A stretch of 64,000 nucleotides of DNA from the NCBI GenBank assembly GCA_950097015.1, contig CATNEN010000039.1, positions 12,710,001 to 12,774,000 of the forward strand, read 5' to 3'. This DNA is from Macrostomum hystrix. Taxonomy: Eukaryota > Animalia > Platyhelminthes. A program made the translations under genes and the position numbers. The notes beneath the pieces are model-generated. The model had not been told where the DNA came from. It was given only the letters and a program-made list of their open reading frames with translations, and did not search any database. This document shows, one piece after another, positions 11,219 through 32,063 of this stretch. The stretch's first letter is position 1; every line of letters begins with the position of its first letter.

Positions 11219-12006
11219 TTTTGCCTTTCTACCATGCAATTAACTAAAACCACAGACAGCACAGGTCTGGCCTGGCCTAGCCGGGCCTCATTATTCAATA
11301 AAATAAATTGCGTCGGTTTTATTACAATTTACATTTTACACCAACTGCGAGACTGCATTATGCAATCATTCTCAATCTACATCTATAGATGTAAAAAATG
11401 CACAACAGCATCGATTGATCGATACCTGAGCGAGCCAGCTTATACTAATTTGGTTGCAGTTTGATCTAAATTTCTCTGTTGATCTTGGCTTTTTCCAAAC
11501 ATATCGGCCTGCAAGTACAAAATTACTAGGTGCATAATTTTTGCATGCTCTCCCCGGCATCGAGTACTTGCAGTAAGGTACCCTTGGCCGATACTAAAAT
11601 GCCTTCGGGACGCCCTAGCTAAAACAATAGTTAATTGGCGAGGCGAAATTTGATTATCGAACCTTTGCCGAATTCAGTCGGTCTCTTACTGCGAAGACTC
11701 TCTTCATTCTTATTCTCATTTACGCACGATCTCGAATTGCACTGTCGTAGCTGTGAATTCAATTAAATTATTTGTGTTATTGATTACTTGTTTTTACTCA
11801 CCTGTCCGATTTCTGATTTTTTAAAGCCCAGTTTTCTCTGGCCCCATTGCACTGTACAATACACATTGCAAGTGGGCCCACCACCCTTTCCGCAGTCAGA
11901 GACCGTCCCCCCCTGCCCAGTGCTAACTTTGTGAACTAGTTTATCTTTGTGCACAGCCCTCATAGTCACCAACCTACCTATCAAAGAATCTAAGAGTTCA
12001 CCTACT

Positions 12007-14382
12007 ATGAAAGCTACTGGTAATTCGCCAACTTCCGAAAGTTCCTACGAGAAGTCACAGCGACGGTTGAAAACACCGACTGGGCTATCTGCCGACGAAC
12101 GTGCTCGACCAACATCTCGCCCAGGTCTGCCACCATCAATCCGACGCACCAGCCGCCCGTCCAGGTCGCCGATCAAGAGGATCCAAGTCCTAGATCACCC
12201 AGCAGCAGCCTCCGGTGACTCCACTGACGCCACACCTGCAGGTCAAGAAGGTCAAAGGTTAGAAAAGCCAACATATACTGCCACACCTGACAATAGATTC
12301 GACATGCCTACTGAGGATGTTGATCTCGATGCCCAGCCGACAACACTGCCAAAGCCTGCCGTCGATATCGATGGCCAAGTCGTCCTGCCGCAACAGCCAG
12401 ACACCTCTGAAAGGGAGGAATTCGAACCCGAGTTAGATGCTCTACTAGCCTACCTACCTAACATGCTAAAGGACAAAGCTGACCAAATCTATCATCGCCT
12501 AATGACTGACGTAGCCCCACTCGCCAAGCGCATTCATGCCAACCGATCCGTCTACTGGGTGGGCCCAGCCTACCGCTACAAAGGAGCCACTCTACCTGAG
12601 AACAACAACTGGCATGGCCTAATCGCTGAAATTGGCGAATTTCTACATCAAAAAGCTGACCTTGGCCTACCTAAATTCAACAGCTGCATAGTCAACATCT
12701 ACCACGATGCCAAAGACTTCATCCCGTACCATGCAGATGACGAGCCAGAACTAGGCGAAGACCCCATTATCGCGACAGTCTCCTTTGGCGCTGTCCGAAA
12801 TTTTCAGCTCAAATCTAAAGGCTCAAAAAGACTACTACTATCCCTGCCTACTCTACCGGGATCACTAATAACGATGGTGGGAGCCTGCCAACGCAAACTA
12901 CTTCACCGCATCGAACAAGGCAAGCGATCTGATAATCAGGCTCGGATTTCACTTACCTACCGAGTCACTGGCTGCCTGAGTGATGTCGGAAGCGCTGGCC
13001 ACAACAACGGCAACGAGACGAGACCTAGCACGACAGCGGCACCGGCCCTGATGAGAGCGACGACATCGGCGGCGGCGGCGGCGGCGGCGTCAGCATCTGC
13101 AGCATCATGGGGTCCTGTGACGGCAGCCTCCTACGCAAGCATAGCAGCAAAAAATCGGCCAAGAAGACCTCCAGCTCCTATCAAGCCAGTGGTCTTCGAG
13201 ACCTGCCGTGAAGGAGCCGAGAATCATATCAGCTTCCTGGAATGGCTACGCGACAACTTTGGCGGTCTAGCCAGAGCCACCGACACCAAGCCGCTGACGC
13301 ACTCATACGGCTATGTTGTGTTCCCAGCGACTGAAAAGGACCACAACATCTTCCTTCACGAGCCTCTACGCGTCACTGAATTCTTCGGTGAAGCGATTCT
13401 GAGACGCCAAGCTCGAACACGACCACTCGATGATCGCCGACCAGCCGACTTCGGCAAAGACATCATCATCAGACGCCCTACGGCCAACTTCGTCATCACC
13501 AATGTCCCATCATCCGTCACCGAAGCCCAGCTCCTCTGCCTGCTCAAAGACCAACTTGGGCTGAAGATCAAGTCCGTCAAACGGATCATCTCCAGAGCAA
13601 CTGGGCAATCGACTACCATGTTCCGTGCCTTTGCAGAAAACCAGGAAACTGCAGAGTTCTGCATAAAAAACGGAATCGATGCTGACTTCTGCACCTTTCC
13701 ATGCGAGGCCAGCAGATCCGAAGAGCCTGCCTTTGCAGTCCAATGCCGCAACTGCCAATCCTTCGGCCACAGGACTCAAGCGTGCAACCAAGCCAGGCGC
13801 TGCCGAATCTGCGGCCAAGACCATGAATGGGAAGACTGCACAGAACAGCTAGCCACCTGTGCCAACTGCGGAGGCAACCACAGGACCACATCGCGCTTCT
13901 GTCCACATGCAGCTGAACAGCATCGTGCCGCTACAGCCAAGGTTGCGCAAATTCGCCAACAGCAACAACCACAGCAAACTGCCACTGAGTCGGGAGCCGC
14001 TGCCGCCGCTGCCACCGCTGCCGCCGCTGCCGCCACCGACAACTCCACCAACGACGCCAATGACGAGCACTGGCTTCACCCCCCTCATCAGCCCAGAGCG
14101 ATCCCAGCGGTCGTCGAATCGAGCGCCATGTTGGCTGCAACGCCGGCGACCTCTGTGGCATCGATCTGCGGAAAAGTGAGTGCAAATGTAAACGCGAACC
14201 CTGAAGCACTGTTAGGCAATCTACTGCCCCTACTTATCCGTGTATTAGTCCAAGTGCTAATGGCAGTCCTGGTCCGACCGGATGGGAGCGCACCCAGCGC
14301 GGACTCGATCAGTCAAACGGTCGAAGAAACGCTGCGCAATGTGCTTCCCAGTCTGGGCGGTCTGGGGGCCAAAAGCACTTGA
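12007..14382 (+). CDS. LINE ORF1: AlkB-type 2OG-Fe(II) dioxygenase fused to gag-like protein with three CCHC zinc knuckles
   Basis: FNSCIVNIY...YHADDE...IATVSFG...LLHRI...RISLTYR (HxD..H..RxxxxxR) at about 12520-12966; knuckles CRNCQSFGHRTQAC, CRICGQDHEWEDC, CANCGGNHRTTSRFC at 13744-13902. First ATG at 12007; frame is open from TTG at 11947. Confidence 0.92.
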   Translation: MKATGNSPTSESSYEKSQRRLKTPTGLSADERARPTSRPGLPPSIRRTSRPSRSPIKRIQVLDHPAAASGDSTDATPAGQEGQRLEKPTYTATPDNRFDMPTEDVDLDAQPTTLPKPAVDIDGQVVLPQQPDTSEREEFEPELDALLAYLPNMLKDKADQIYHRLMTDVAPLAKRIHANRSVYWVGPAYRYKGATLPENNNWHGLIAEIGEFLHQKADLGLPKFNSCIVNIYHDAKDFIPYHADDEPELGEDPIIATVSFGAVRNFQLKSKGSKRLLLSLPTLPGSLITMVGACQRKLLHRIEQGKRSDNQARISLTYRVTGCLSDVGSAGHNNGNETRPSTTAAPALMRATTSAAAAAAASASAASWGPVTAASYASIAAKNRPRRPPAPIKPVVFETCREGAENHISFLEWLRDNFGGLARATDTKPLTHSYGYVVFPATEKDHNIFLHEPLRVTEFFGEAILRRQARTRPLDDRRPADFGKDIIIRRPTANFVITNVPSSVTEAQLLCLLKDQLGLKIKSVKRIISRATGQSTTMFRAFAENQETAEFCIKNGIDADFCTFPCEASRSEEPAFAVQCRNCQSFGHRTQACNQARRCRICGQDHEWEDCTEQLATCANCGGNHRTTSRFCPHAAEQHRAATAKVAQIRQQQQPQQTATESGAAAAAATAAAAAATDNSTNDANDEHWLHPPHQPRAIPAVVESSAMLAATPATSVASICGKVSANVNANPEALLGNLLPLLIRVLVQVLMAVLVRPDGSAPSADSISQTVEETLRNVLPSLGGLGAKST

Positions 14383-14438
14383 GACTGTGAACAATTAGAT
14401 TCAGTGATCAAAATTCAAATTCTAAACCTAGGACAAAT

Positions 14439-17303
14439 ATGGGTCAAAACCTGAATCCAAACCCAAATCAAAACTCAAACCCAAACTTCGCTTCGTGTCC
14501 AGGCAACAGTCTCAAAATTGTCCACCTAAACTGCAGAGGTTTCATGCCCAAAATCAGAGAAATTAAACAGTGGTTAGCTGAGGAAAAATTTGACATCGCA
14601 CTCTTCTCAGAGACCCTTCTAAAAAGCTCGCATGTAACCCAAATCCCAGGTTACTCCATCATCAGATTTGATCAACCCCACGCTAAAAGAGGTCTTCTCA
14701 TGGCACACTCTCCTCGAGTAAAAATTTTAAATGTCAAGTTTCTTTATCAAAACTCGCATGAAATAATATCTGGGCTTGTTGAATCATCTGATGATTCCTC
14801 ACCAGCTTTCAACATTCATCTGGTTTATCGATCACCTAAACCCGATCAGCTTGATATCTCCCTGCTCTCCAGCCTCATGTCAACAAGCAGACGCTCACTC
14901 CTTCTTGGAGACTTAAACGCGAGGCACCACTTCCTGGGTGGACAAAGCCAGATCAACCAAGCAGGCAAACAACTATATGAATGGCTGTCCGAAGACCCAG
15001 ACCCACCGATTGTGTTAAACACGCCAGGAGACTTTACCCGTATTGCCCACAAAAAGGGGACAGTCTCTCGAAATGTCCTAGACCTCGGACTCGCTACCAG
15101 CCCCATGCTAAATTCTGTTCGTGACTTCTATGTTGGGAAGGATCTGAACAGTGATCATCTTCCCATCATGACTATTCTTGATTCAAATAGTCGAGCTTGG
15201 ACCGGTCCAGAAAAAAGGAAAAACTTTGAAAAAACTGACTGGAACAAATTTCACCAGCATCTCTACAACTGTCTACAAACTTCTGTACAAAATAGCCTAT
15301 CATCAGAGGCTGAAATTGATGCAGAAGTTGAAATAATCACAAACGCAATAAACCAGGCAGTCCAAGAAACAGTGCCAGATGTCAAACCTCAGCAACCACT
15401 GCCACCATTTATTATAATAAAAATCAAAGAACGCCGAAGACTGCGTCGCCTGTTTCACACCACTAGATGTGATCAATACAGGAAGGATGCAAATAAATTA
15501 GCAAACGACATCAAACGCGACATTTCTGATTTCCAAAACAACAAATTCACAAAAATCTGCGACAACATTGTTGAAAAAAGCAAAACTCACAAAGTAAAAA
15601 ATTTCTGGCATGACGCCAAATCACTCATGGGAAAAAGAAAAGCCTCAAACATCCCCTCCCTGTCTGTGGGATCCCAATATGCCCACACAGATCAGGATAA
15701 GGCCGAGCTCCTGGCTGACACTCTTGATTCCAAGATGAAGCCTATTCCCTCCACAAACCCCAACATCACTGCACAGGTTACGCAAACTGCCAAACTTCCC
15801 CTTTTTCGGCCTATTCCGCCAAGCTCTTCCAAACCTAACGACATCCTCGAAGTTGAATTCACTGTCATGGACACTGTCTGGGAACTCGCACACCTCCGAG
15901 AAGATGGAGCGCCAGGTCTGGATAAAATCCCAAACTGTGTCCTCAAACATGGCCTAGAAGCCTTGGCCATAAACCGCATCACCTCTCTATTCAATGCATG
16001 CTTCCAACAAGGCATCTTCCCAACAGCATGGAAAAAAGCTGTTGTCACAATGATCCCAAAACCTGATAAGCCCCCTGAATTTCCAAACTCGTACAGACCG
16101 ATTAGCCTTACCTCCTGCCTTGGCAAGGTGTTTGAAAAATTACTTGCTAAAAGACTAACAAAATTCTTAGAAAAATTTCAAATACTTGGCGAAGACCAAT
16201 GTGCCTACAGAAGAGTGCACTCTACCTATGATAACCTCTGCAGAGTAGTTCAAGACGTGATGAACTGCAAATGCAAATCAAAAAGACTCATAGCAATTTT
16301 CTTAGACATTGAAGCTGCCTTTGACTCAGCCTGGCACGATATGATCAGACAAATGATGCTAAACATCAGGCTTCCAAATATGCTGACCCGAATTTTTTCA
16401 AACTACCTTGACAGTAGAGAAATTCAAGTCAGAGTAAATGGCAAACTCAGCAGAATTCGAAAAATCCAAGCAGGAGTGCCGCAGGGAGGTATCCTCAGTC
16501 CTCTTCTTTATCTGCTCTATGTTAGCACTATGCCAGCACCTCCACATCCAAACCTAAAAAGAAGCCAGTTTGCGGATGACATGGCAATCTGGGCTATTGC
16601 GGACACCTTTAATGGTATTAAACTTCTCATCCAACCTTACCTAGATAGGGTTGTCAACTGGTGTGGTGAACACGGAATTAAACTCAATGCATCCAAAAGC
16701 GCAGCCATCGCTTTCAATTACACTCCACCAAATCACGTAGATCTTAGACCTGCCTTAAAAGTGGGTAATATCCGCATTCCCTATAACACCACGATTCGCT
16801 TCTTAGGGATTATACTGGATCAAAAATTGAACCTAAATGCCCACATTGACAAAATGGTTGCAACCTGCAGAGCCATCATCATGTCTCTTCGCCGAATTTC
16901 CAAACTGACTAAATTGAGCAGTGTCAAACTCAAACTACTATATCGAGCATACGCCGAAAGTGCTCTTACCTATGGAGCACCCATCCTTAACATCATAACT
17001 CTGCGAAACCTTGAAAGGCTCCAGAAACTGCAAAACCTCGCCCTGAGAATCTGTTATGACGCACCCAGCTATACAAAAATCAGCTACTTGCATGACATGG
17101 CATGCATGCCCATGATTGCGGATCGAATCCGATCCCTTTCAGTTAGCTGGCTGGCCAAAGTCAAAAAAGCAAAACTCCACGGCTTTCATGTTCCCCCACT
17201 TCCCCCAAACACAAACAGACTTGTTCCAATGCCCATTCTAAATGTCCTAGAATCCGCACTGCAACGTCGCGTTGCAAATAGAGCACCACAAAACAGTTTG
17301 TGA
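14439..17303 (+). CDS. LINE ORF2: AP-like endonuclease + reverse transcriptase (no RNase H)
   Basis: APE motifs HLNCRG, SET, LLGDLNARH, LDL, SDHLP; RT motifs APGLD, YRPISL, FLDIEAAFD, GVPQGGILSP, FADD, FLG. Confidence 0.97.
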   Translation: MGQNLNPNPNQNSNPNFASCPGNSLKIVHLNCRGFMPKIREIKQWLAEEKFDIALFSETLLKSSHVTQIPGYSIIRFDQPHAKRGLLMAHSPRVKILNVKFLYQNSHEIISGLVESSDDSSPAFNIHLVYRSPKPDQLDISLLSSLMSTSRRSLLLGDLNARHHFLGGQSQINQAGKQLYEWLSEDPDPPIVLNTPGDFTRIAHKKGTVSRNVLDLGLATSPMLNSVRDFYVGKDLNSDHLPIMTILDSNSRAWTGPEKRKNFEKTDWNKFHQHLYNCLQTSVQNSLSSEAEIDAEVEIITNAINQAVQETVPDVKPQQPLPPFIIIKIKERRRLRRLFHTTRCDQYRKDANKLANDIKRDISDFQNNKFTKICDNIVEKSKTHKVKNFWHDAKSLMGKRKASNIPSLSVGSQYAHTDQDKAELLADTLDSKMKPIPSTNPNITAQVTQTAKLPLFRPIPPSSSKPNDILEVEFTVMDTVWELAHLREDGAPGLDKIPNCVLKHGLEALAINRITSLFNACFQQGIFPTAWKKAVVTMIPKPDKPPEFPNSYRPISLTSCLGKVFEKLLAKRLTKFLEKFQILGEDQCAYRRVHSTYDNLCRVVQDVMNCKCKSKRLIAIFLDIEAAFDSAWHDMIRQMMLNIRLPNMLTRIFSNYLDSREIQVRVNGKLSRIRKIQAGVPQGGILSPLLYLLYVSTMPAPPHPNLKRSQFADDMAIWAIADTFNGIKLLIQPYLDRVVNWCGEHGIKLNASKSAAIAFNYTPPNHVDLRPALKVGNIRIPYNTTIRFLGIILDQKLNLNAHIDKMVATCRAIIMSLRRISKLTKLSSVKLKLLYRAYAESALTYGAPILNIITLRNLERLQKLQNLALRICYDAPSYTKISYLHDMACMPMIADRIRSLSVSWLAKVKKAKLHGFHVPPLPPNTNRLVPMPILNVLESALQRRVANRAPQNSL

Positions 17304-18913
17304 TGCTAGGTTGCCATGGTTTCAATCCCACCAGTTATACCTTACCAAAAGTCCTGTTCCATACCAACTAACTAAATAGCCAGTTGGCTAAGATGCTTAT
17401 CCCCAACCTGAATGGTCCCAGCTTCTTACCCACTTAGCAAATTATCTGTTCTCCCATTTCTTTTGTCTCTTAAATGAACTATACTAAACGACCAAACCTC
17501 CAACAACTAGAATTTTACGAAAGCAATATACTATCTAATAAGCCTGAGTAGGTAGGGGCAGTAGAGCGCAGCCATACACACCGAAAGTCAATATTTGTTT
17601 CTAGTAAATTGTATTTCTTCTCTTCATAACAACGACTGTACTTATCTTTTAGCCATTTTTATGCATGCGCTTAAACTCGAGATTAAAACCACTGCGTTTT
17701 TTTTAAACTCACAACCTTGTTTTTATCACTAACCTGCCACAAAATATTTTTGCTGATTATTCCCCCACCCTGACTCGCGTCTGAAATCATCTAAATTCAA
17801 TAATCTTTCAAATGCTTTGTAACCTCAATACTCGTATTCTGAAATTCTAAACTTTTGTCTCAAACCCAAATATGCTAAATATTTCGTGCACTTTTACACC
17901 CATAACCAATAAACTCTCCAAATAATGTCAACTGTAACATTTATATAACGAATGTACATATTACTCTATCTAACCAATCATGTGAAATTGTACCTTTAAA
18001 AACGTGATAGACACGATACTGTTATACTCTCCACATTCTGCATGATTCAGCAATAAAAAACACACAGACAACAAGTCACCCACCTCAATGGCGCAACTAA
18101 ACATCTGCCACCTTATTACAATCATCTCAATGTAACCTTAGGCTCTCAATAACAACAACCACCCCAGTCCTAAACAGGAGGGCCCGCAAATCATAATATT
18201 GCACAGTAATCTTGGATGATCTCACCCAAACCACTCAAATTTAGACAAATATTCATTCCGATGATTCCGACTACTCACAGTAGCACGTTCCTCATTTCTT
18301 ATTTAGAAAAACAATAAAATCAAAACTCAAAATTCTGTATATAATAAAATTCTATGCCGCTCTGCGTTTTAAATCTCCCCATTTTATTCTGACCCTGTCT
18401 TTGTGGGGGCTTCTCCCGTTTTATTTCCCTTGCTTACTGTATGACAGATCGGCGCATATACTACTCGATTCTGCTTTATATTCGACATACAAATAATCAA
18501 ACAAAAATATAAATCGTCAGCAGTAGAGTGCTCCGGCACTGAGCTGCAGCCCTTTCGGCAATATCGTTTTACTACTACTGCGAAGACTCTCTTTTTTGCA
18601 TGGTAAGACACCGTGCGGATCCAATTGAGCGATCTGCTGTATTTTTGACAAGCCGCACCCAGACTGCGGCTGCCTAATAAAACTAATAAAATACAAAAGC
18701 TAGTGGTGCCTGCCGTAGAAAAGTACACAAATTTGCAAACTTGATAAAGCAATTCGCTGCATGATTACTCTTTCATTGGTTGCTTGCAATTCTTATAGTT
18801 GCCAATCAAAAATATATTGTTTTCAAAGATTGACTGATTGATTTGTCCAACCAATATTACAATATACTCGACTGAATTGAGTATATATGCCAGTTTGGCC
18901 GCTTCCAGCCAGT

Positions 18914-19033
18914 GGCAACGGCCATACCACGTTGAAAACACCGGTTCTCGTCCGATCACCGAAGTTAAGCAACGTTGGGTTTGGTTAGTACTTGGATGGG
19001 TGACCGCCTGGGAATACCAAATGCTGTTGTCTT
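18914..19033 (+). rRNA. 5S rRNA: 5S rRNA gene
   Basis: Copy of 908-1027. Confidence 0.97.
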
Positions 19034-19482
19034 TTTTGCCTTTTCTACCATGCAATTAACTAAAACCACAGACAGCACAGGTCTGGCCTGGCCTAGCCGG
19101 GCCTCATTATTCAATTAAATAAATTGCGTCGGTTTTATTACAATTTACATTTTACACCAACTGCGAGACTGCATTATGCAATCATTCTCAATCTACATCT
19201 ATAGATGTAAAAAATGCACAACAGCATCGATTGATCGATACCTGAGCGAGCCAGCTTATACTAATTTGGTTGCAGTTTGATCTAAATTTCTCTGTTGATC
19301 TTGGCTTTTTCCAAACATATCGGCCTGCAAGTACAAAATTACTAGGTGCATAATTTTTGCCTGCTCTCCCCGGCATCGAGTACTTGCAGTAAGGTACCCT
19401 TGGCCGATACTAAAATGCCTTCGGGACGCCCTAGCTAAAACAATAGTTAATTGGCGAGGCGAAATTTGATTATCGAACCTTT

Positions 19483-19598
19483 GCCGAATTCAGTCGGTCT
19501 CTTACTGCGAAGACTCTCTTTTTTGCATGGTAAGACACCGTGCGGATCCAATTGAGCGATCTGCTGTATTTTTGACAAGCCGCACCCAGACTGCGGCT
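19483..19598 (+). ncRNA. SL RNA: SL RNA gene
   Basis: Copy of 550-665. Confidence 0.9.
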
Positions 19599-19840
19599 GC
19601 CTAATAAAACTAATAAAATACAAAAGCTAGTGGTGCCTGCCGTAGAAAAGTACACAAATTTGCAAACTTGATAAAGCAATTCGCTGCATGATTACTCTTT
19701 CATTGGTTGCTTGCAATTCTTATAGTTGCCAATCAAAAATATATTGTTTTCAAAGATTGACTGATTGATTTGTCCAACCAATATTACAATATACTCGACT
19801 GAATTGAGTATATATGCCAGTTTGGCCGCTTCCAGCCAGT

Positions 19841-19960
19841 GGCAACGGCCATACCACGTTGAAAACACCGGTTCTCGTCCGATCACCGAAGTTAAGCAAC
19901 GTTGGGTTTGGTTAGTACTTGGATGGGTGACCGCCTGGGAATACCAAATGCTGTTGTCTT
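19841..19960 (+). rRNA. 5S rRNA: 5S rRNA gene
   Basis: Copy of 908-1027. Confidence 0.97.
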
Positions 19961-20409
19961 TTTTGCCTTTTCTACCATGCAATTAACTAAAACCACAGAC
20001 AGCACAGGTCTGGCCTGGCCTAGCCGGGCCTCATTATTCAATTAAATAAATTGCGTCGGTTTTATTACAATTTACATTTTACACCAACTGCGAGACTGCA
20101 TTATGCAATCATTCTCAATCTACATCTATAGATGTAAAAAATGCACAACAGCATCGATTGATCGATACCTGAGCGAGCCAGCTTATACTAATTTGGTTGC
20201 AGTTTGATCTAAATTTCTCTGTTGATCTTGGCTTTTTCCAAACATATCGGCCTGCAAGTACAAAATTACTAGGTGCATAATTTTTGCCTGCTCTCCCCGG
20301 CATCGAGTACTTGCAGTAAGGTAACCTTGGCCGATACTAAAATGCCTTCGGGACGCCCTAGCTAAAACAATAGTTAATTGGCGAGGCGAAATTTGATTAT
20401 CGAACCTTT

Positions 20410-20525
20410 GCCGAATTCAGTCGGTCTCTTACTGCGAAGACTCTCTTTTTTGCATGGTAAGACACCGTGCGGATCCAATTGAGCGATCTGCTGTATTTTT
20501 GACAAGCCGCACCCAGACTGCGGCT
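20410..20525 (+). ncRNA. SL RNA: SL RNA gene
   Basis: Copy of 550-665. Confidence 0.9.
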
Positions 20526-20767
20526 GCCTAATAAAACTAATAAAATACAAAAGCTAGTGGTGCCTGCCGTAGAAAAGTACACAAATTTGCAAACTTGATA
20601 AAGCAATTCGCTGCATGATTACTCTTTCATTGGTTGCTTGCAATTCTTATAGTTGCCAATCAAAAATATATTGTTTTCAAAGATTGACTGATTGATTTGT
20701 CCAACCAATATTACAATATACTCGACTGAATTGAGTATATATGCCAGTTTGGCCGCTTCCAGCCAGT

Positions 20768-20887
20768 GGCAACGGCCATACCACGTTGAAAACACCGGTT
20801 CTCGTCCGATCACCGAAGTTAAGCAACGTTGGGTTTGGTTAGTACTTGGATGGGTGACCGCCTGGGAATACCAAATGCTGTTGTCTT
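20768..20887 (+). rRNA. 5S rRNA: 5S rRNA gene
   Basis: Copy of 908-1027. Confidence 0.97.
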
Positions 20888-21336
20888 TTTTGCCTTTTCT
20901 ACCATGCAATTAACTAAAACCACAGACAGCACAGGTCTGGCCTGGCCTAGCCGGGCCTCATTATTCAATTAAATAAATTGCGTCGGTTTTATTACAATTT
21001 ACATTTTACACCAACCGCGAGACTGCATTATGCAATCATTCTCAATCTACATCTATAGATGTAAAAAATGCACAACAGCATCGATTGATCGATACCTGAG
21101 CGAGCCAGCTTATACTAATTTGGTTGCAGTTTGATCTAAATTTCTCTGTTGATCTTGGCTTTTTCCAAACATATCGGCCTGCAAGTACAAAATTACTAGG
21201 TGCATAATTTTTGCATGCTCTCCCCGGCATCGAGTACTTGCAGTAAGGTACCCTTGGCCGATACTAAAATGCCTTCGGGACGCCCTAGCTAAAACAATAG
21301 TTAATTGGCGAGGCGAAATTTGATTATCGAACCTTT

Positions 21337-21452
21337 GCCGAATTCAGTCGGTCTCTTACTGCGAAGACTCCCTTTTTTGCATGGTAAGACACCGTGCGGA
21401 TCCGATTGAGCGATCTGCTGTATTTTTGACAAGCCGCACCCAGACTGCGGCT
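21337..21452 (+). ncRNA. SL RNA: SL RNA gene, minor variant (GACTCCC leader, TCCGATTG intron)
   Basis: Copy of 550-665 with two linked substitutions. Confidence 0.88.
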
Positions 21453-21694
21453 GCCTAATAAAACTAATAAAATACAAAAGCTAGTGGTGCCTGCCGTAGA
21501 AAAGTACACAAATTTGCAAACTTGATAAAGCAATTCGCTGCATGATTACTCTTTCATTGGTTGCTTGCAATTCTTATAGTTGCCAATCAAAAATATATTG
21601 TTTTCAAAGATTGACTGATTGATTTGTCCAACCAATATTACAATATACTCGACTGAATTGAGTATATATGCCAGTTTGGCCGCTTCCAGCCAGT

Positions 21695-21814
21695 GGCAAC
21701 GGCCATACCACGTTGAAAACACCGGTTCTCGTCCGATCACCGAAGTTAAGCAACGTTGGGTTTGGTTAGTACTTGGATGGGTGACCGCCTGGGAATACCA
21801 AATGCTGTTGTCTT
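21695..21814 (+). rRNA. 5S rRNA: 5S rRNA gene
   Basis: Copy of 908-1027. Confidence 0.97.
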
Positions 21815-22603
21815 TTTTGCCTTTTCTACCATGCAATTAACTAAAACCACAGACAGCACAGGTCTGGCCTGGCCTAGCCGGGCCTCATTATTCAATTAAA
21901 TAAATTGCGTCGGTTTTATTACAATTTACATTTTACACCAACTGCGAGACTGCATTATGCAATCATTCTCAATCTACATCTATAGATGTAAAAAATGCAC
22001 AACAGCATCGATTGATCGATACCTGAGCGAGCCAGCTTATACTAATTTGGTTGCAGTTTGATCTAAATTTCTCTGTTGATCTTGGCTTTTTCCAAACATA
22101 TCGGCCTGCAAGTACAAAATTACTAGGTGCATAATTTTTGCCTGCTCTCCCCGGCATCGAGTACTTGCAGTAAGGTAACCTTGGCCGATACTAAAATGCC
22201 TTCGGGACGCCCTAGCTAAAACAATAGTTAATTGGCGAGGCGAAATTTGATTATCGAACCTTTGCCGAATTCAGTCGGTCTCTTACTGCGAAGACTCTCT
22301 TCATTCTTATTCTCATTTACGCACGATCTCGAATTGCACTGTCGTAGCTGTGAATTCAATTAAATTATTTGTGTTATTGATTACTTGTTTTTACTCACCT
22401 GTCCGATTTCTGATTTTTTAAAGCCCAGTTTTCTCTGGCCCCATTGCACTGTACAATACACATTGCAAGTGGGCCCACCACCCTTTCCGCAGTCAGAGAC
22501 CGTCCCCCCCTGCCCAGTGCTAACTTTGTGAACTAGTTTATCTTTGTGCACAGCCCTCATAGTCACCAACCTACCTATCAAAGAATCTAAGAGTTCACCT
22601 ACT

Positions 22604-24979
22604 ATGAAAGCTACTGGTAATTCGCCAACTTCCGAAAGTTCCTACGAGAAGTCACAGCGACGGTTGAAAACACCGACTGGGCTATCTGCCGACGAACGTG
22701 CTCGACCAACATCTCGCCCAGGTCTGCCACCATCAATCCGACGCACCAGCCGCCCGTCCAGGTCGCCGATCAAGAGGATCCAAGTCCTAGATCACCCAGC
22801 AGCAGCCTCCGGTGACTCCACTGACGCCACACCTGCAGGTCAAGAAGGTCAAAGGTTAGAAAAGCCAACATATACTGCCACACCTGACAATAGATTCGAC
22901 ATGCCTACTGAGGATGTTGATCTCGATGCCCAGCCGACAACACTGCCAAAGCCTGCCGTCGATATCGATGGCCAAGTCGTCCTGCCGCAACAGCCAGACA
23001 CCTCTGAAAGGGAGGAATTCGAACCCGAGTTAGATGCTCTACTAGCCTACCTACCTAACATGCTAAAGGACAAAGCTGACCAAATCTATCATCGCCTAAT
23101 GACTGACGTAGCCCCACTCGCCAAGCGCATTCATGCCAACCGATCCGTCTACTGGGTGGGCCCAGCCTACCGCTACAAAGGAGCCACTCTACCTGAGAAC
23201 AACAACTGGCATGGCCTAATCGCTGAAATTGGCGAATTTCTACATCAAAAAGCTGACCTTGGCCTACCTAAATTCAACAGCTGCATAGTCAACATCTACC
23301 ACGATGCCAAAGACTTCATCCCGTACCATGCAGATGACGAGCCAGAACTAGGCGAAGACCCCATTATCGCGACAGTCTCCTTTGGCGCTGTCCGAAATTT
23401 TCAGCTCAAATCTAAAGGCTCAAAAAGACTACTACTATCCCTGCCTACTCTACCGGGATCACTAATAACGATGGTGGGAGCCTGCCAACGCAAACTACTT
23501 CACCGCATCGAACAAGGCAAGCGATCTGATAATCAGGCTCGGATTTCACTTACCTACCGAGTCACTGGCTGCCTGAGTGATGTCGGAAGCGCTGGCCACA
23601 ACAACGGCAACGAGACGAGACCTAGCACGACAGCGGCACCGGCCCTGATGAGAGCGACGACATCGGCGGCGGCGGCGGCGGCGGCGTCAGCATCTGCAGC
23701 ATCATGGGGTCCTGTGACGGCAGCCTCCTACGCAAGCATAGCAGCAAAAAATCGGCCAAGAAGACCTCCAGCTCCTATCAAGCCAGTGGTCTTCGAGACC
23801 TGCCGTGAAGGAGCCGAGAATCATATCAGCTTCCTGGAATGGCTACGCGACAACTTTGGCGGTCTAGCCAGAGCCACCGACACCAAGCCGCTGACGCACT
23901 CATACGGCTATGTTGTGTTCCCAGCGACTGAAAAGGACCACAACATCTTCCTTCACGAGCCTCTACGCGTCACTGAATTCTTCGGTGAAGCGATTCTGAG
24001 ACGCCAAGCTCGAACACGACCACTCGATGATCGCCGACCAGCCGACTTCGGCAAAGACATCATCATCAGACGCCCTACGGCCAACTTCGTCATCACCAAT
24101 GTCCCATCATCCGTCACCGAAGCCCAGCTCCTCTGCCTGCTCAAAGACCAACTTGGGCTGAAGATCAAGTCCGTCAAACGGATCATCTCCAGAGCAACTG
24201 GGCAATCGACTACCATGTTCCGTGCCTTTGCAGAAAACCAGGAAACTGCAGAGTTCTGCATAAAAAACGGAATCGATGCTGACTTCTGCACCTTTCCATG
24301 CGAGGCCAGCAGATCCGAAGAGCCTGCCTTTGCAGTCCAATGCCGCAACTGCCAATCCTTCGGCCACAGGACTCAAGCGTGCAACCAAGCCAGGCGCTGC
24401 CGAATCTGCGGCCAAGACCATGAATGGGAAGACTGCACAGAACAGCTAGCCACCTGTGCCAACTGCGGAGGCAACCACAGGACCACATCGCGCTTCTGTC
24501 CACATGCAGCTGAACAGCATCGTGCCGCTACAGCCAAGGTTGCGCAAATTCGCCAACAGCAACAACCACAGCAAACTGCCACTGAGTCGGGAGCCGCTGC
24601 CGCCGCTGCCACCGCTGCCGCCGCTGCCGCCACCGACAACTCCACCAACGACGCCAATGACGAGCACTGGCTTCACCCCCCTCATCAGCCCAGAGCGATC
24701 CCAGCGGTCGTCGAATCGAGCGCCATGTTGGCTGCAACGCCGGCGACCTCTGTGGCATCGATCTGCGGAAAAGTGAGTGCAAATGTAAACGCGAACCCTG
24801 AAGCACTGTTAGGCAATCTACTGCCCCTACTTATCCGTGTATTAGTCCAAGTGCTAATGGCAGTCCTGGTCCGACCGGATGGGAGCGCACCCAGCGCGGA
24901 CTCGATCAGTCAAACGGTCGAAGAAACGCTGCGCAATGTGCTTCCCAGTCTGGGCGGTCTGGGGGCCAAAAGCACTTGA
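22604..24979 (+). CDS. LINE ORF1 (AlkB + CCHC gag), copy 2
   Basis: Identical protein to 12007-14382. Confidence 0.92.
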   Translation: MKATGNSPTSESSYEKSQRRLKTPTGLSADERARPTSRPGLPPSIRRTSRPSRSPIKRIQVLDHPAAASGDSTDATPAGQEGQRLEKPTYTATPDNRFDMPTEDVDLDAQPTTLPKPAVDIDGQVVLPQQPDTSEREEFEPELDALLAYLPNMLKDKADQIYHRLMTDVAPLAKRIHANRSVYWVGPAYRYKGATLPENNNWHGLIAEIGEFLHQKADLGLPKFNSCIVNIYHDAKDFIPYHADDEPELGEDPIIATVSFGAVRNFQLKSKGSKRLLLSLPTLPGSLITMVGACQRKLLHRIEQGKRSDNQARISLTYRVTGCLSDVGSAGHNNGNETRPSTTAAPALMRATTSAAAAAAASASAASWGPVTAASYASIAAKNRPRRPPAPIKPVVFETCREGAENHISFLEWLRDNFGGLARATDTKPLTHSYGYVVFPATEKDHNIFLHEPLRVTEFFGEAILRRQARTRPLDDRRPADFGKDIIIRRPTANFVITNVPSSVTEAQLLCLLKDQLGLKIKSVKRIISRATGQSTTMFRAFAENQETAEFCIKNGIDADFCTFPCEASRSEEPAFAVQCRNCQSFGHRTQACNQARRCRICGQDHEWEDCTEQLATCANCGGNHRTTSRFCPHAAEQHRAATAKVAQIRQQQQPQQTATESGAAAAAATAAAAAATDNSTNDANDEHWLHPPHQPRAIPAVVESSAMLAATPATSVASICGKVSANVNANPEALLGNLLPLLIRVLVQVLMAVLVRPDGSAPSADSISQTVEETLRNVLPSLGGLGAKST

Positions 24980-25035
24980 GACTGTGAACAATTAGATTCA
25001 GTGATCAAAATTCAAATTCTAAACCTAGGACAAAT

Positions 25036-27900
25036 ATGGGTCAAAACCTGAATCCAAACCCAAATCAAAACTCAAACCCAAACTTCGCTTCGTGTCCAGG
25101 CAACAGTCTCAAAATTGTCCACCTAAACTGCAGAGGTTTCATGCCCAAAATCAGAGAAATTAAACAGTGGTTAGCTGAGGAAAAATTTGACATCGCACTC
25201 TTCTCAGAGACCCTTCTAAAAAGCTCGCATGTAACCCAAATCCCAGGTTACTCCATCATCAGATTTGATCAACCCCACGCTAAAAGAGGTCTTCTCATGG
25301 CACACTCTCCTCGAGTAAAAATTTTAAATGTCAAGTTTCTTTATCAAAACTCGCATGAAATAATATCTGGGCTTGTTGAATCATCTGATGATTCCTCACC
25401 AGCTTTCAACATTCATCTGGTTTATCGATCACCTAAACCCGATCAGCTTGATATCTCCCTGCTCTCCAGCCTCATGTCAACAAGCAGACGCTCACTCCTT
25501 CTTGGAGACTTAAACGCGAGGCACCACTTCCTGGGTGGACAAAGCCAGATCAACCAAGCAGGCAAACAACTATATGAATGGCTGTCCGAAGACCCAGACC
25601 CACCGATTGTGTTAAACACGCCAGGAGACTTTACCCGTATTGCCCACAAAAAGGGGACAGTCTCTCGAAATGTCCTAGACCTCGGACTCGCTACCAGCCC
25701 CATGCTAAATTCTGTTCGTGACTTCTATGTTGGGAAGGATCTGAACAGTGATCATCTTCCCATCATGACTATTCTTGATTCAAATAGTCGAGCTTGGACC
25801 GGTCCAGAAAAAAGGAAAAACTTTGAAAAAACTGACTGGAACAAATTTCACCAGCATCTCTACAACTGTCTACAAACTTCTGTACAAAATAGCCTATCAT
25901 CAGAGGCTGAAATTGATGCAGAAGTTGAAATAATCACAAACGCAATAAACCAGGCAGTCCAAGAAACAGTGCCAGATGTCAAACCTCAGCAACCACTGCC
26001 ACCATTTATTATAATAAAAATCAAAGAACGCCGAAGACTGCGTCGCCTGTTTCACACCACTAGATGTGATCAATACAGGAAGGATGCAAATAAATTAGCA
26101 AACGACATCAAACGCGACATTTCTGATTTCCAAAACAACAAATTCACAAAAATCTGCGACAACATTGTTGAAAAAAGCAAAACTCACAAAGTAAAAAATT
26201 TCTGGCATGACGCCAAATCACTCATGGGAAAAAGAAAAGCCTCAAACATCCCCTCCCTGTCTGTGGGATCCCAATATGCCCACACAGATCAGGATAAGGC
26301 CGAGCTCCTGGCTGACACTCTTGATTCCAAGATGAAGCCTATTCCCTCCACAAACCCCAACATCACTGCACAGGTTACGCAAACTGCCAAACTTCCCCTT
26401 TTTCGGCCTATTCCGCCAAGCTCTTCCAAACCTAACGACATCCTCGAAGTTGAATTCACTGTCATGGACACTGTCTGGGAACTCGCACACCTCCGAGAAG
26501 ATGGAGCGCCAGGTCTGGATAAAATCCCAAACTGTGTCCTCAAACATGGCCTAGAAGCCTTGGCCATAAACCGCATCACCTCTCTATTCAATGCATGCTT
26601 CCAACAAGGCATCTTCCCAACAGCATGGAAAAAAGCTGTTGTCACAATGATCCCAAAACCTGATAAGCCCCCTGAATTTCCAAACTCGTACAGACCGATT
26701 AGCCTTACCTCCTGCCTTGGCAAGGTGTTTGAAAAATTACTTGCTAAAAGACTAACAAAATTCTTAGAAAAATTTCAAATACTTGGCGAAGACCAATGTG
26801 CCTACAGAAGAGTGCACTCTACCTATGATAACCTCTGCAGAGTAGTTCAAGACGTGATGAACTGCAAATGCAAATCAAAAAGACTCATAGCAATTTTCTT
26901 AGACATTGAAGCTGCCTTTGACTCAGCCTGGCACGATATGATCAGACAAATGATGCTAAACATCAGGCTTCCAAATATGCTGACCCGAATTTTTTCAAAC
27001 TACCTTGACAGTAGAGAAATTCAAGTCAGAGTAAATGGCAAACTCAGCAGAATTCGAAAAATCCAAGCAGGAGTGCCGCAGGGAGGTATCCTCAGTCCTC
27101 TTCTTTATCTGCTCTATGTTAGCACTATGCCAGCACCTCCACATCCAAACCTAAAAAGAAGCCAGTTTGCGGATGACATGGCAATCTGGGCTATTGCGGA
27201 CACCTTTAATGGTATTAAACTTCTCATCCAACCTTACCTAGATAGGGTTGTCAACTGGTGTGGTGAACACGGAATTAAACTCAATGCATCCAAAAGCGCA
27301 GCCATCGCTTTCAATTACACTCCACCAAATCACGTAGATCTTAGACCTGCCTTAAAAGTGGGTAATATCCGCATTCCCTATAACACCACGATTCGCTTCT
27401 TAGGGATTATACTGGATCAAAAATTGAACCTAAATGCCCACATTGACAAAATGGTTGCAACCTGCAGAGCCATCATCATGTCTCTTCGCCGAATTTCCAA
27501 ACTGACTAAATTGAGCAGTGTCAAACTCAAACTACTATATCGAGCATACGCCGAAAGTGCTCTTACCTATGGAGCACCCATCCTTAACATCATAACTCTG
27601 CGAAACCTTGAAAGGCTCCAGAAACTGCAAAACCTCGCCCTGAGAATCTGTTATGACGCACCCAGCTATACAAAAATCAGCTACTTGCATGACATGGCAT
27701 GCATGCCCATGATTGCGGATCGAATCCGATCCCTTTCAGTTAGCTGGCTGGCCAAAGTCAAAAAAGCAAAACTCCACGGCTTTCATGTTCCCCCACTTCC
27801 CCCAAACACAAACAGACTTGTTCCAATGCCCATTCTAAATGTCCTAGAATCCGCACTGCAACGTCGCGTTGCAAATAGAGCACCACAAAACAGTTTGTGA
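25036..27900 (+). CDS. LINE ORF2 (APE + RT), copy 2
   Basis: Identical protein to 14439-17303. Confidence 0.97.
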   Translation: MGQNLNPNPNQNSNPNFASCPGNSLKIVHLNCRGFMPKIREIKQWLAEEKFDIALFSETLLKSSHVTQIPGYSIIRFDQPHAKRGLLMAHSPRVKILNVKFLYQNSHEIISGLVESSDDSSPAFNIHLVYRSPKPDQLDISLLSSLMSTSRRSLLLGDLNARHHFLGGQSQINQAGKQLYEWLSEDPDPPIVLNTPGDFTRIAHKKGTVSRNVLDLGLATSPMLNSVRDFYVGKDLNSDHLPIMTILDSNSRAWTGPEKRKNFEKTDWNKFHQHLYNCLQTSVQNSLSSEAEIDAEVEIITNAINQAVQETVPDVKPQQPLPPFIIIKIKERRRLRRLFHTTRCDQYRKDANKLANDIKRDISDFQNNKFTKICDNIVEKSKTHKVKNFWHDAKSLMGKRKASNIPSLSVGSQYAHTDQDKAELLADTLDSKMKPIPSTNPNITAQVTQTAKLPLFRPIPPSSSKPNDILEVEFTVMDTVWELAHLREDGAPGLDKIPNCVLKHGLEALAINRITSLFNACFQQGIFPTAWKKAVVTMIPKPDKPPEFPNSYRPISLTSCLGKVFEKLLAKRLTKFLEKFQILGEDQCAYRRVHSTYDNLCRVVQDVMNCKCKSKRLIAIFLDIEAAFDSAWHDMIRQMMLNIRLPNMLTRIFSNYLDSREIQVRVNGKLSRIRKIQAGVPQGGILSPLLYLLYVSTMPAPPHPNLKRSQFADDMAIWAIADTFNGIKLLIQPYLDRVVNWCGEHGIKLNASKSAAIAFNYTPPNHVDLRPALKVGNIRIPYNTTIRFLGIILDQKLNLNAHIDKMVATCRAIIMSLRRISKLTKLSSVKLKLLYRAYAESALTYGAPILNIITLRNLERLQKLQNLALRICYDAPSYTKISYLHDMACMPMIADRIRSLSVSWLAKVKKAKLHGFHVPPLPPNTNRLVPMPILNVLESALQRRVANRAPQNSL

Positions 27901-29526
27901 TGCTAGGTTGCCATGGTTTCAATCCCACCAGTTATACCTTACCAAAAGTCCTGTTCCATACCAACTAACTAAATAGCCAGTTGGCTAAGATGCTTATCCC
28001 CAACCTGAATGGTCCCAGCTTCTTACCCACTTAGCAAATTATCTGTTCTCCCATTTCTTTTGTCTCTTAAATGAACTATACTAAACGACCAAACCTCCAA
28101 CAACTAGAATTTTACGAAAGCAATATACTATCTAATAAGCCTGAGTAGGTAGGGGCAGTAGAGCGCAGCCATACACACCGAAAGTCAATATTTGTTTCTA
28201 GTAAATTGTATTTCTTCTCTTCATAACAACGACTGTACTTATCTTTTAGCCATTTTTATGCATGCGCTTAAACTCGAGATTAAAACCACTGCGTTTTTTT
28301 TAAACTCACAACCTTGTTTTTATCACTAACCTGCCACAAAATATTTTTGCTGATTATTCCCCCACCCTGACTCGCGTCTGAAATCATCTAAATTCAATAA
28401 TCTTTCAAATGCTTTGTAACCTCAATACTCGTATTCTGAAATTCTAAACTTTTGTCTCAAACCCAAATATGCTAAATATTTCGTGCACTTTTACACCCAT
28501 AACCAATAAACTCTCCAAATAATGTCAACTGTAACATTTATATAACGAATGTACATATTACTCTATCTAACCAATCATGTGAAATTGTACCTTTAAAAAC
28601 GTGATAGACACGATACTGTTATACTCTCCACATTCTGCATGATTCAGCAATAAAAAACACACAGACAACAAGTCACCCACCTCAATGGCGCAACTAAACA
28701 TCTGCCACCTTATTACAATCATCTCAATGTAACCTTAGGCTCTCAATAACAACAACCACCCCAGTCCTAAACAGGAGGGCCCGCAAATCATAATATTGCA
28801 CAGTAATCTTGGATGATCTCACCCAAACCACTCAAATTTAGACAAATATTCATTCCGATGATTCCGACTACTCACAGTAGCACGTTCCTCATTTCTTATT
28901 TAGAAAAACAATAAAATCAAAACTCAAAATTCTGTATATAATAAAATTCTATGCCGCTCTGCGTTTTAAATCTCCCCATTTTATTCTGACCCTGTCTTTG
29001 TGGGGGCTTCTCCCGTTTTATTTCCCTTGCTTACTGTATGACAGATCGGCGCATATACTACTCGATTCTGCTTTATATTCGACATACAAATAATCAAACA
29101 AAAATATAAATCGTCAGCAGTAGAGTGCTCCGGCACTGAGCTGCAGCCCTTTCGGCAATATCGTTTTACTACTACTCAGTCGGTCTCTTACTGCGAAGAC
29201 TCTCTTTTTTGCATGGTAAGACACCGTGCGGATCCAATTGAGCGATCTGCTGTATTTTTGACAAGCCGCACCCAGACTGCGGCTGCCTAATAAAACTAAT
29301 AAAATACAAAAGCTAGTGGTGCCTGCCGTAGAAAAGTACACAAATTTGCAAACTTGATAAAGCAATTCGCTGCATGATTACTCTTTCATTGGTTGCTTGC
29401 AATTCTTATAGTTGCCAATCAAAAATATATTGTTTTCAAAGATTGACTGATTGATTTGTCCAACCAATATTACAATATACTCGACTGAATTGAGTATATA
29501 TGCCAGTTTGGCCGCTTCCAGCCAGT

Positions 29527-29646
29527 GGCAACGGCCATACCACGTTGAAAACACCGGTTCTCGTCCGATCACCGAAGTTAAGCAACGTTGGGTTTGGTTA
29601 GTACTTGGATGGGTGACCGCCTGGGAATACCAAATGCTGTTGTCTT
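29527..29646 (+). rRNA. 5S rRNA: 5S rRNA gene
   Basis: Copy of 908-1027. Confidence 0.97.
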
Positions 29647-30094
29647 TTTTGCCTTTCTACCATGCAATTAACTAAAACCACAGACAGCACAGGTCTGGCC
29701 TGGCCTAGCCAGGCCTCATTATTCAATTAAATAAATTGCGTCGGCTTTATTACAATTTACATTTTACACCAACCGCGAGACTGCATTATGCAATCATTCT
29801 CAATCTACATCTATAGATGTAAAAAATGCACAACAGCATCGATTGATCGATACCTGAGCGAGCCAGCTTATACTAATTTGGTTGCAGTTTGATCTAAATT
29901 TCTCTGTTGATCTTGGCTTTTTCCAAACATATCGGCCTGCAAGTACAAAATTACTAGGTGCATAATTTTTGCCTGCTCTCCCCGGCATCGAGTACTTGCA
30001 GTAAGGTAACCTTGGCCGATACTAAAATGCCTTCGGGACGCCCTAGCTAAAACAATAGTTAATTGGCGAGGCGAAATTTGATTATCGAACCTTT

Positions 30095-30210
30095 GCCGAA
30101 TTCAGTCGGTCTCTTACTGCGAAGACTCTCTTTTTTGCATGGTAAGACACCGTGCGGATCCAATTGAGCGATCTGCTGTATTTTTGACAAGCCGCACCCA
30201 GACTGCGGCT
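30095..30210 (+). ncRNA. SL RNA: SL RNA gene
   Basis: Copy of 550-665. Confidence 0.9.
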
Positions 30211-30452
30211 GCCTAATAAAACTAATAAAATACAAAAGCTAGTGGTGCCTGCCGTAGAAAAGTACACAAATTTGCAAACTTGATAAAGCAATTCGCTGCA
30301 TGATTACTCTTTCATTGGTTGCTTGCAATTCTTATAGTTGCCAATCAAAAATATATTGTTTTCAAAGATTGACTGATTGATTTGTCCAACCAATATTACA
30401 ATATACTCGACTGAATTGAGTATATATGCCAGTTTGGCCGCTTCCAGCCAGT

Positions 30453-30572
30453 GGCAACGGCCATACCACGTTGAAAACACCGGTTCTCGTCCGATCACCG
30501 AAGTTAAGCAACGTTGGGTTTGGTTAGTACTTGGATGGGTGACCGCCTGGGAATACCAAATGCTGTTGTCTT
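30453..30572 (+). rRNA. 5S rRNA: 5S rRNA gene
   Basis: Copy of 908-1027. Confidence 0.97.
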
Positions 30573-31021
30573 TTTTGCCTTTTCTACCATGCAATTAACT
30601 AAAACCACAGACAGCACAGGTCTGGCCTGGCCTAGCCGGGCCTCATTATTCAATTAAATAAATTGCGTCGGTTTTATTACAATTTACATTTTACACCAAC
30701 CGCGAGACTGCATTATGCAATCATTCTCAATCTACATCTATAGATGTAAAAAATGCACAACAGCATCGATTGATCGATACCTGAGCGAGCCAGCTTATAC
30801 TAATTTGGTTGCAGTTTGATCTAAATTTCTCTGTTGATCTTGGCTTTTTCCAAACATATCGGCCTGCAAGTACAAAATTACTAGGTGCATAATTTTTGCC
30901 TGCTCTCCCCGGCATCGAGTACTTGCAGTAAGGTAACCTTGGCCGATACTAAAATGCCTTCGGGACGCCCTAGCTAAAACAATAGTTAATTGGCGAGGCG
31001 AAATTTGATTATCGAACCTTT

Positions 31022-31137
31022 GCCGAATTCAGTCGGTCTCTTACTGCGAAGACTCTCTTTTTTGCATGGTAAGACACCGTGCGGATCCAATTGAGCGATC
31101 TGCTGTATTTTTGACAAGCCGCACCCAGACTGCGGCT
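31022..31137 (+). ncRNA. SL RNA: SL RNA gene
   Basis: Copy of 550-665. Confidence 0.9.
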
Positions 31138-31379
31138 GCCTAATAAAACTAATAAAATACAAAAGCTAGTGGTGCCTGCCGTAGAAAAGTACACAAATTT
31201 GCAAACTTGATAAAGCAATTCGCTGCATGATTACTCTTTCATTGGTTGCTTGCAATTCTTATAGTTGCCAATCAAAAATATATTGTTTTCAAAGATTGAC
31301 TGATTGATTTGTCCAACCAATATTACAATATACTCGACTGAATTGAGTATATATGCCAGTTTGGCCGCTTCCAGCCAGT

Positions 31380-31499
31380 GGCAACGGCCATACCACGTTG
31401 AAAACACCGGTTCTCGTCCGATCACCGAAGTTAAGCAACGTTGGGTTTGGTTAGTACTTGGATGGGTGACCGCCTGGGAATACCAAATGCTGTTGTCTT
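31380..31499 (+). rRNA. 5S rRNA: 5S rRNA gene
   Basis: Copy of 908-1027. Confidence 0.97.
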
Positions 31500-31947
31500 T
31501 TTTGCCTTTCTACCATGCAATTAACTAAAACCACAGACAGCACAGGTCTGGCCTGGCCTAGCCGGGCCTCATTATTCAATTAAATAAATTGCGTCGGTTT
31601 TATTACAATTTACATTTTACACCAACTGCGAGACTGCATTATGCAATCATTCTCAATCTACATCTATAGATGTAAAAAATGCACAACAGCATCGATTGAT
31701 CGATACCTGAGCGAGCCAGCTTATACTAATTTGGTTGCAGTTTGATCTAAATTTCTCTGTTGATCTTGGCTTTTTCCAAACATATCGGCCTGCAAGTACA
31801 AAATTACTAGGTGCATAATTTTTGCATGCTCTCCCCGGCATCGAGTACTTGCAGTAAGGTACCCTTGGCCGATACTAAAATGCCTTCGGGACGCCCTAGC
31901 AAAAACAATAGTTAATTGGCGAGGCGAAATTTGATTATCGAACCTTT

Positions 31948-32063
31948 GCCGAATTCAGTCGGTCTCTTACTGCGAAGACTCTCTTTTTTGCATGGTAAGA
32001 CACCGTGCGGATCCAATTGAGCGATCTGCTGTATTTTTGACAAGCCGCACCCAGACTGCGGCT
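31948..32063 (+). ncRNA. SL RNA: SL RNA gene
   Basis: Copy of 550-665. Confidence 0.9.

Follow-up and report, generated by a model that had tools for sequence, protein, structure and literature searches.

A stretch of 64,000 nucleotides from the genome of the flatworm Macrostomum hystrix (the window) carries two copies of a long interspersed nuclear element (LINE), here called the SL-A LINE, inside spliced-leader (SL) RNA genes of a tandem array. We conclude, with a probability of roughly 0.8, that this element is a young, probably active, site-specific retrotransposon without long terminal repeats (non-LTR) that inserts into SL RNA genes, always in sense orientation. Its two copies are identical, and neither their open reading frames (ORFs) nor their catalytic motifs are disrupted. 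Retrotransposons confined to leader genes are a standard example of target specificity and, to our knowledge, have so far been known only with a restriction-like endonuclease, in trypanosomatids and nematodes. A lineage using an apurinic/apyrimidinic endonuclease (APE) with the same habit in a flatworm would represent an independent origin on a different enzyme scaffold.

The window corresponds to C39:12710001-12774000 of the M. hystrix SR1 assembly (220,453,370 bp in 42 contigs; PMC10468722), and its first two thirds are occupied by the target of the LINE:

1..44359, forward strand: tandem array of 5S rRNA and SL-A RNA genes, from Rfam 5S matches and unit typing
10741..10787, forward strand: example of an uninterrupted SL-A leader, GCCGAAT/TCAGT CGG...CTCTT/TTTTGCATG, with GTAAG donor, Sm-like site and hairpin downstream

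Rfam identified 33 co-oriented 5S rRNA genes between position 1 and about 44.3 kb, in units of 926-928 bp, with an SL RNA gene between each pair of consecutive 5S genes. In each SL gene the leader ends in ...TTTTTTGCATG and is followed by a GTAAG donor, an Sm-like site and a terminal hairpin. The genome contains two types of leader gene. SL-A (...GACTCTCTTTTTTGCATG) is the type found in the 5S array of the window, and the first 22 nt of its core match the published M. lignano leader (PMC8629364), which is 35 nt long and begins with CGG. The SL-B leader is equal to that published 35-nt leader without a single difference (PMC8629364), and the intact SL-B genes, 17 in number, are all confined to contigs C15, C17 and C42, where they are spaced about 11.6-11.7 kb apart. 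High-depth cDNA-like contigs cross the SL-A donor site, which indicates that SL-A is transcribed. About 90 leader-gene units are assembled, making the target a multicopy one.

Within this array the two insertions and their target-site duplications are placed as follows:

11705..18578, forward strand: LINE copy 1, full length, 6874 bp
11687..11704, forward strand: upstream duplication of copy 1, 15-18 bp
18579..18593, forward strand: downstream duplication of copy 1, with 18576 as a possible start should the final TAC be part of the target
22302..29175, forward strand: LINE copy 2, 6874 bp, same sequence as copy 1, with ORF1 at 22604-24979 and ORF2 at 25036-27900
22271..22301, forward strand: upstream duplication of copy 2, 31 bp
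29176..29206, forward strand: downstream duplication of copy 2, 31 bp, its left edge at the predicted canonical bottom-strand nick (AAT/TCAG)

Both copies run in the sense of the leader and share one 5' junction, at which ...GAAGACTCTCTT of the leader exon is followed by CATTC. Both also end in ...CGTTTTACTACTAC, and the two 3' flanks begin differently, with TGCGAAG... after copy 1 and TCAGTCGGTCTCTTACTGCGAAG... after copy 2. The copy-1 duplication reads TACTGCGAAGACTCTCTT and is 18 bp long; its TAC may belong to the element tail, hence the range of 15-18 bp. The 3' junction of copy 1 equals that of copy 2 minus 16 bp that lie between TAC microhomologies. An earlier note on this DNA had described two full-length elements of about 6.87 kb in the 5S/SL array with equal ORF translations and differing duplications. 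We found the copies to be equal at every base (0 differences in 6874) and the duplications to differ as reported (copy 1, 15-18 bp; copy 2, 31 bp). Its placement of the insertions after nucleotide 38 of a 47-nt leader held for the shared junction base, whereas the numbering presupposes a transcription start at GCCG, which is an assumption. On the published 35-nt leader the 5' junction falls after nucleotide 26, and the 3' junction of copy 2 lies 5 nt upstream of nucleotide 1.

In the 220-Mb assembly there are only two full-length copies, both in the SL-A array, and the last 400 bp of the element match nothing in the genome apart from these two. Whole-element DNA searches added only two old fragments (77-85% identity), one of which, at 77-83%, lies at C39:12659660-12660694, 7 kb upstream of the array start and on the same strand as the array.

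Further evidence for targeting comes from relatives of the element, of which a first look at ORF2 yielded 993 candidates in the genome; percentages used below as names (69%, 54-57%, 61-62%, 43%) are their ORF2 identities to the SL-A LINE. At C1:16039662-16048552 (locus L015+L026) two relatives stand in tandem at an SL-B gene. The order is a 54-57% element ending in ...AAAAAAA, then AAAGACGGTCTCTTA, then a 5'-truncated 69% element (L026) ending in ...ATCATC, which is followed by AAAGACGGTCTCTTACTGCG...GCATG gtaag, an SL-B gene. The 3' ends of both families lie at the SL-B base homologous to the copy-2 junction (/AAAGACGG in SL-B, /TCAGTCGG in SL-A). This locus has a 15-bp duplication; it restored the target site, which the second insertion then used again. 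Insertions at the same target base thus occur in two unit haplotypes of the array and, for two further families, at the homologous base of the other leader-gene type, which supports the sequence-specific targeting proposed in the earlier note.

A 43% family on C17 and C42 adjoins intact SL-B genes, with its 3' end 17 bp upstream of the homologous base. On these contigs SL-B spacings of 18.9 and 16.9 kb occur against the usual value of about 11.65 kb, and would fit one full-length and one truncated insertion per contig. Searching the genome for the pattern 'non-T + nick-site + CGGTCTCTTA' gave 10 matches compared with 2 for the reversed control, adding modest support for junctions at the leader start. 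Seven genome sites keep the 3' part of the leader without the 5' part; one of them is copy 1 and another, on C42, lies by LINE fragments. A 5' junction after ...WMTT was considered as a general genome pattern and rejected, its 3 matches being the two copies and one other site.

We weighed whether the window records one insertion event or two. Two independent insertions are, in our judgement, quite likely. Over the 605 bp that precede the element, one indel and three substitutions separate the two host units, and the closest of these 4 differences is about 120 bp away from the insertion. The neighbouring unit types differ as well, in the order K[copy1]A C L[copy2]M D. Two insertions are favoured because unequal exchange would have duplicated the upstream flank too, yet the flanks differ. 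The earlier note had argued for independence from the duplications; their difference alone is no proof, since a 16-bp deletion flanked by TAC could mimic it, and it is the host-unit haplotypes that support the claim. The opposing account holds that a single insertion was copied by unequal exchange or gene conversion and that one copy then lost 16 bp by slippage between the TAC repeats. The copies are indeed 100% identical, the copy-1 junction is the copy-2 junction minus exactly those 16 TAC-flanked bp, the 3' flanks are otherwise equal up to the next 5S gene, and recombination is frequent in tandem arrays. Against these points stand the differing upstream flanks and unit types, which an unequal crossover would have carried along, while conversion would have to take in 6.9 kb of heterology and still have its tract end no more than about 120 bp from the element. 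We therefore regard a single insertion as unlikely; were it true, the family might still be leader-specific, and the window would then record one event. A doubling of one element by mis-assembly or polishing of the array has in our view a negligible probability. The array is repetitive, the copies are equal, and the contig depths of unit and element suggest more units in the reads than in the assembly; however, branch points in contigs of two runs back the two 3' junctions, and the copies sit in different unit haplotypes.

It is also very improbable that the element has no sequence specificity and that random insertions simply survived in redundant arrays alone. Multicopy arrays do tolerate insertions, and family B as well as several 42% relatives are dispersed, but survivorship would scatter insertions over the 927-bp unit. 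Instead, five junctions from three families fall in a 31-bp stretch, 3 of the 5 at the homologous base in two gene types, and all are in sense orientation. Several observations nevertheless weigh against a leader-specific element with independent insertions. The family's own sample is two copies, and the exact 16-bp difference between their 3' junctions, bounded by TAC repeats, is one that a later deletion could yield. Gene conversion with a short tract could in principle copy an insertion into another array unit. The fragment of 85% identity, at C39:6078710-6080336, lies outside any known leader gene, and family B (61-62%), the closest full-length relative, is found at unrelated sites. R1-type elements show the opposite of the pattern seen here, in which the 5' junction is fixed and the 3' junction varies. 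The read evidence consists of contigs, and the arrangement of the two copies in cis rests on the assembly.

For the insertion mechanism we infer the nick positions, the order of the cuts, primer trimming and current activity. The APE of ORF2 would place its bottom-strand nick right where the leader gene starts, opposite ...AAT/TCAGTCGG on the top strand of SL-A and ...CGT/AAAGACGG on that of SL-B, a site 5 nt upstream of the published 35-nt leader. The reverse transcriptase (RT) would recognise the element RNA by two conserved hairpins of the 3' untranslated region (UTR) and prime on the short (TAC)3 tail by target-primed reverse transcription, and a cut of the top strand 15-31 bp downstream, inside the leader, would generate the duplications. 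Copy 2 would then represent the canonical nick, and copy 1 a separate insertion in which the primer end was trimmed or slipped by 13-16 nt to a TAC microhomology, the TAC in ...CTCTTAC/TGCG. Each insertion would disable one leader gene, but the many copies of the target would make it a safe haven, the role that rDNA plays for R1 and R2.

A possible, if rather doubtful, extension is that a chimeric RNA arises from the SL promoter with 26 nt of capped leader at its start, and that the leader cDNA anneals to the target upon re-insertion. Such promoter capture would explain a fixed 5' junction combined with a variable 3' junction and duplication length. If true, the LINE message would mimic a trans-spliced host mRNA; an APE-type LINE would then imitate the 5' ends of host mRNAs and, with the ALKBH3-like domain of ORF1 described below, also repair or demethylate the RNA it produces. 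As the source of the upstream leader piece, trans-splicing of the element's transcript was considered and rejected: the flank extends through the SL promoter to the 5S unit, and at the junction the leader stops short of its 3' end.

The anatomy of the element is that of an autonomous LINE, with features given here for copy 1:

11705..12006, forward strand: 5' UTR of 302 nt, starting with CATTC and free of ATG
12007..14382, forward strand: ORF1, 791 amino acids from the first ATG
12526..12963, forward strand (copy 2: 23123-23560): AlkB-type 2OG-Fe(II) dioxygenase domain in ORF1, Pfam PF13532, E 1.6e-18
13744..13902, forward strand: three CCHC zinc knuckles of ORF1, preceded by a stretch resembling an RNA recognition motif (RRM)
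14439..17303, forward strand: ORF2, 954 amino acids, without an RNase H domain and without a C-terminal Cys/His motif
14526..15170, forward strand: APE-type endonuclease domain of ORF2, Pfam PF14529 (Exo_endo_phos_2) and PF03372 (Exo_endo_phos), with NCRG, GDLN and SDH motifs present
16053..16814, forward strand: reverse transcriptase domain, Pfam PF00078 (RVT_1), E 8e-35, with FADD at residue 711
18520-18547 and 18549-18559, forward strand: two conserved 3' UTR hairpins (RNAalifold)
18570..18578, forward strand: 3' tail (TAC)3, no poly(A)

Only 2% of mononucleotide shuffles of the 5' UTR are free of ATG, and an Rfam search for a hepatitis delta virus-like or other ribozyme at the 5' end of the element gave nothing below E=0.8. 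The nearest solved relative of the ORF1 dioxygenase is human ALKBH3 (E 1e-17), and the HxD, H and RxxxxxR motifs for iron and 2-oxoglutarate (2OG) binding are in place, so that judged by sequence this ALKBH3-like domain is apparently intact. Family B (49% identity) and the 43% family have a match to this region too, which makes the AlkB domain an old trait of this Macrostomum LINE clade. Elsewhere, the sole retrotransposon AlkB case found in our literature search is that of orchid Ty3/Gypsy elements (PMC9289625). By Pfam, the intact ORF2 provides the endonuclease and RT of an autonomous LINE; in its C-terminal ~160 residues past the RT we saw no Pfam domain and no Cys/His motif. Pfam matches and motif inspection thus recovered every part of the layout given in the earlier note, namely two ORFs, three CCHC knuckles and APE-RT without RNase H. 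Across 7 clade members, RNAalifold found compensatory changes in 10 of the 14 predicted pairs of the 3' UTR hairpins. This covariation across families points to recognition by the RT of its own RNA 3' end through the hairpins.

Read evidence came from Logan contigs of two runs, X1 (DNA, probably the source sample) and X2. An X1 contig of 2597 nt covers 15983-18579 and stops at the last base common to both junction variants, and further X1 contigs begin with ...CAGTCGGTCTCT before TAC. X2 holds two contigs specific to the family, 14077-14459 and 18405-18579, the latter also stopping at 18579. Because contigs stop where the junction variants diverge, both 3' junctions are present in reads of the two samples. 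X2 contig ends carry remnants of SMART template-switch and Nextera adaptors, by which X2 is most likely cDNA, against a tentative automatic typing of the run as DNA. The family-specific contigs in this cDNA-like run suggest low-level transcription of the element. Together, two identical intact copies and RNA contigs suggest a live system, in an inbred line kept in laboratory culture. In X1 the element has a depth of about 141 and the unit 8,600-20,800, values that are not copy numbers; the real array may be larger than assembled.

Comparison with known systems places the SL-A LINE apart from earlier leader-specific elements. Like SLACS, CZAR and CRE1-2 of trypanosomatids, it is a non-LTR element with a specific insertion site, placed in sense orientation within an SL RNA leader exon. 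SLACS and CZAR insert between leader nucleotides 11 and 12 (PMC5814959), and SLACS is about 6.8 kb long with two ORFs and reported transcription from +1 of the interrupted SL gene (PMC3447711). In contrast to these elements, the SL-A LINE has an N-terminal APE and a gag-like ORF1 with CCHC and AlkB, and it occupies another position in the leader in another host phylum. NeSL-1 of nematodes shares specificity for a metazoan spliced-leader exon (PMC4640811) but belongs to the Utopia/NeSL lineage, with a restriction-like endonuclease and no APE. CRE-clade elements (SLACS/CZAR/CRE1-2) and NeSL elements use a restriction-like endonuclease (PMC4640811); the SL-A LINE falls outside both clades because it has an APE in its place. 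The Pfam matches of ORF2 include no restriction-like endonuclease domain, although no search was aimed at that motif.

Among APE LINEs, the R1 clade (R1, TRAS, SART) and Tx1 clade (Keno, Mutsu) likewise nick specific sites in multicopy RNA genes or repeats (PMC4640811; PMC1919474), and share defined duplications and a safe-haven strategy. The target of Keno is U2 (PMC4640811) and that of R1Bm is 28S rDNA (PMC1919474); leader genes are not named as R1- or Tx1-clade targets in the literature searched. In the SL-A LINE the 5' junction is constant and the 3' junction is not, the 3' end is a hairpin plus (TAC)3, and ORF2 has no visible C-terminal Cys motif, features that would set it apart from elements of both clades. 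The 43% family is closer to home, an APE-RT LINE of the same Macrostomum clade with AlkB in ORF1 that abuts the start of a leader gene, but with 43% ORF2 identity, a position 17 bp further upstream and a putatively rDNA-linked SL-B target. As for a Jockey-type layout, the RRM-like stretch and three CCHC knuckles of ORF1 and the APE-RT of ORF2 without RNase H are all present, while the 3' end has the hairpin and (TAC)3 instead of a poly(A) tail. The assignment to a Jockey/I-group type would thus be one by domain layout only.

The nearest protein relatives in databases have 54% and 45% identity and the rest 30% or less, and protein-cluster matches are to generic APE-RT. Matches to solved structures (PDB) were to the RT of L1 and R2 only, and the APE domain alone has no solved relative by sequence in PDB. 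Our full-text literature search, which covered few subscription journals and no Repbase Reports, found no APE-type leader-specific LINE, in line with the earlier note, which knew of no such described family, and also no study of non-LTR elements in Macrostomum.

An RT tree of 23 rows, from which near-identical duplicates and most of the remote database matches were left out, groups the SL-A LINE and the 69% element as sisters (support 86/96). Family B and the 54-57% element form the next branches, and the 43% family falls in a distant subclade. The 3' tails of the relatives are (AAC)n or (ATC)2. Family B ends in ...AACAACAA at five unrelated flanks and also occurs in head-to-tail arrays; because it is dispersed, specificity is not a trait of the whole clade. 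One genome therefore holds close relatives that are specific (the SL-A LINE, L026 and the 54-57% element) and non-specific (family B), which provides a natural comparison set for the basis of APE sequence specificity, a property also of interest to targeted-integration tools.

The head-to-tail arrays of family B have a period of about 6.5 kb and were found at three chromosomal places (C12:3678225-3698537, C29:3905502-3935486 and C1:13526749-13543275), and in all three a shared 19-bp linker, AGATTTCCGTGGAGAGGTA, separates the ...AACAACAA tail from the CATTCATT start. Either this linker belongs to the element itself, or family B has its own 5' end as insertion site. At C42:73829-78800 (minus strand) fragments of a LINE RT and ORF1 are closely followed downstream by an SL-B gene that has the 3' part of the leader but not its exact 5' core; this may be another insertion with a 3' junction inside the leader, as in copy 1. 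Seven further sites have an A or C followed by (A/T)AAGACGGTCTCTTA, with the rest of the leader core missing:

(A/T)AAGACGGTCTCTTA sites: C1:26428658, C2:6158432, C2:7530227, C12:2182373, C24:834940, C33:2771316 and C11:2341124

They resemble tail-to-nick-site junctions that are then interrupted a second time, as at the L015+L026 locus, or elements bearing this piece of the leader.

Complete SL-B leader exons without a following GTAAG intron were seen at C3:9792961, C7:8561393, C7:9274918, C37:188178 and C38:27887533, and are probably retrocopies of trans-spliced mRNAs or leader copies on other elements. In the 5S/SL-A array, 17 sequence variants occur among the 30 complete units; the units are not homogenised, and some have variant leader exons. 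Along 1-44359 some variants alternate (F G F G; D N D), and some of the array may therefore be organised as a higher-order repeat of two units. Run X3, which carries the label of another organism in the same study, contains a low-depth contig on window positions 18576-18900 that is equal to the SL-A unit, and may reflect carry-over between samples and not a shared array. The 927-bp leader-gene spacing is broken by 11.1 kb at C39:12694795-12705927, 4-15 kb before the window start; both leader exons flanking the break are complete, and a putative insertion of ~10 kb would lie at another place in the unit or immediately upstream of the leader. Past the array, window positions 44889-53475 hold satellites with periods of 22 bp (48 copies), 21 bp (27 copies), 32 bp (10 copies) and 29 bp (16 copies).

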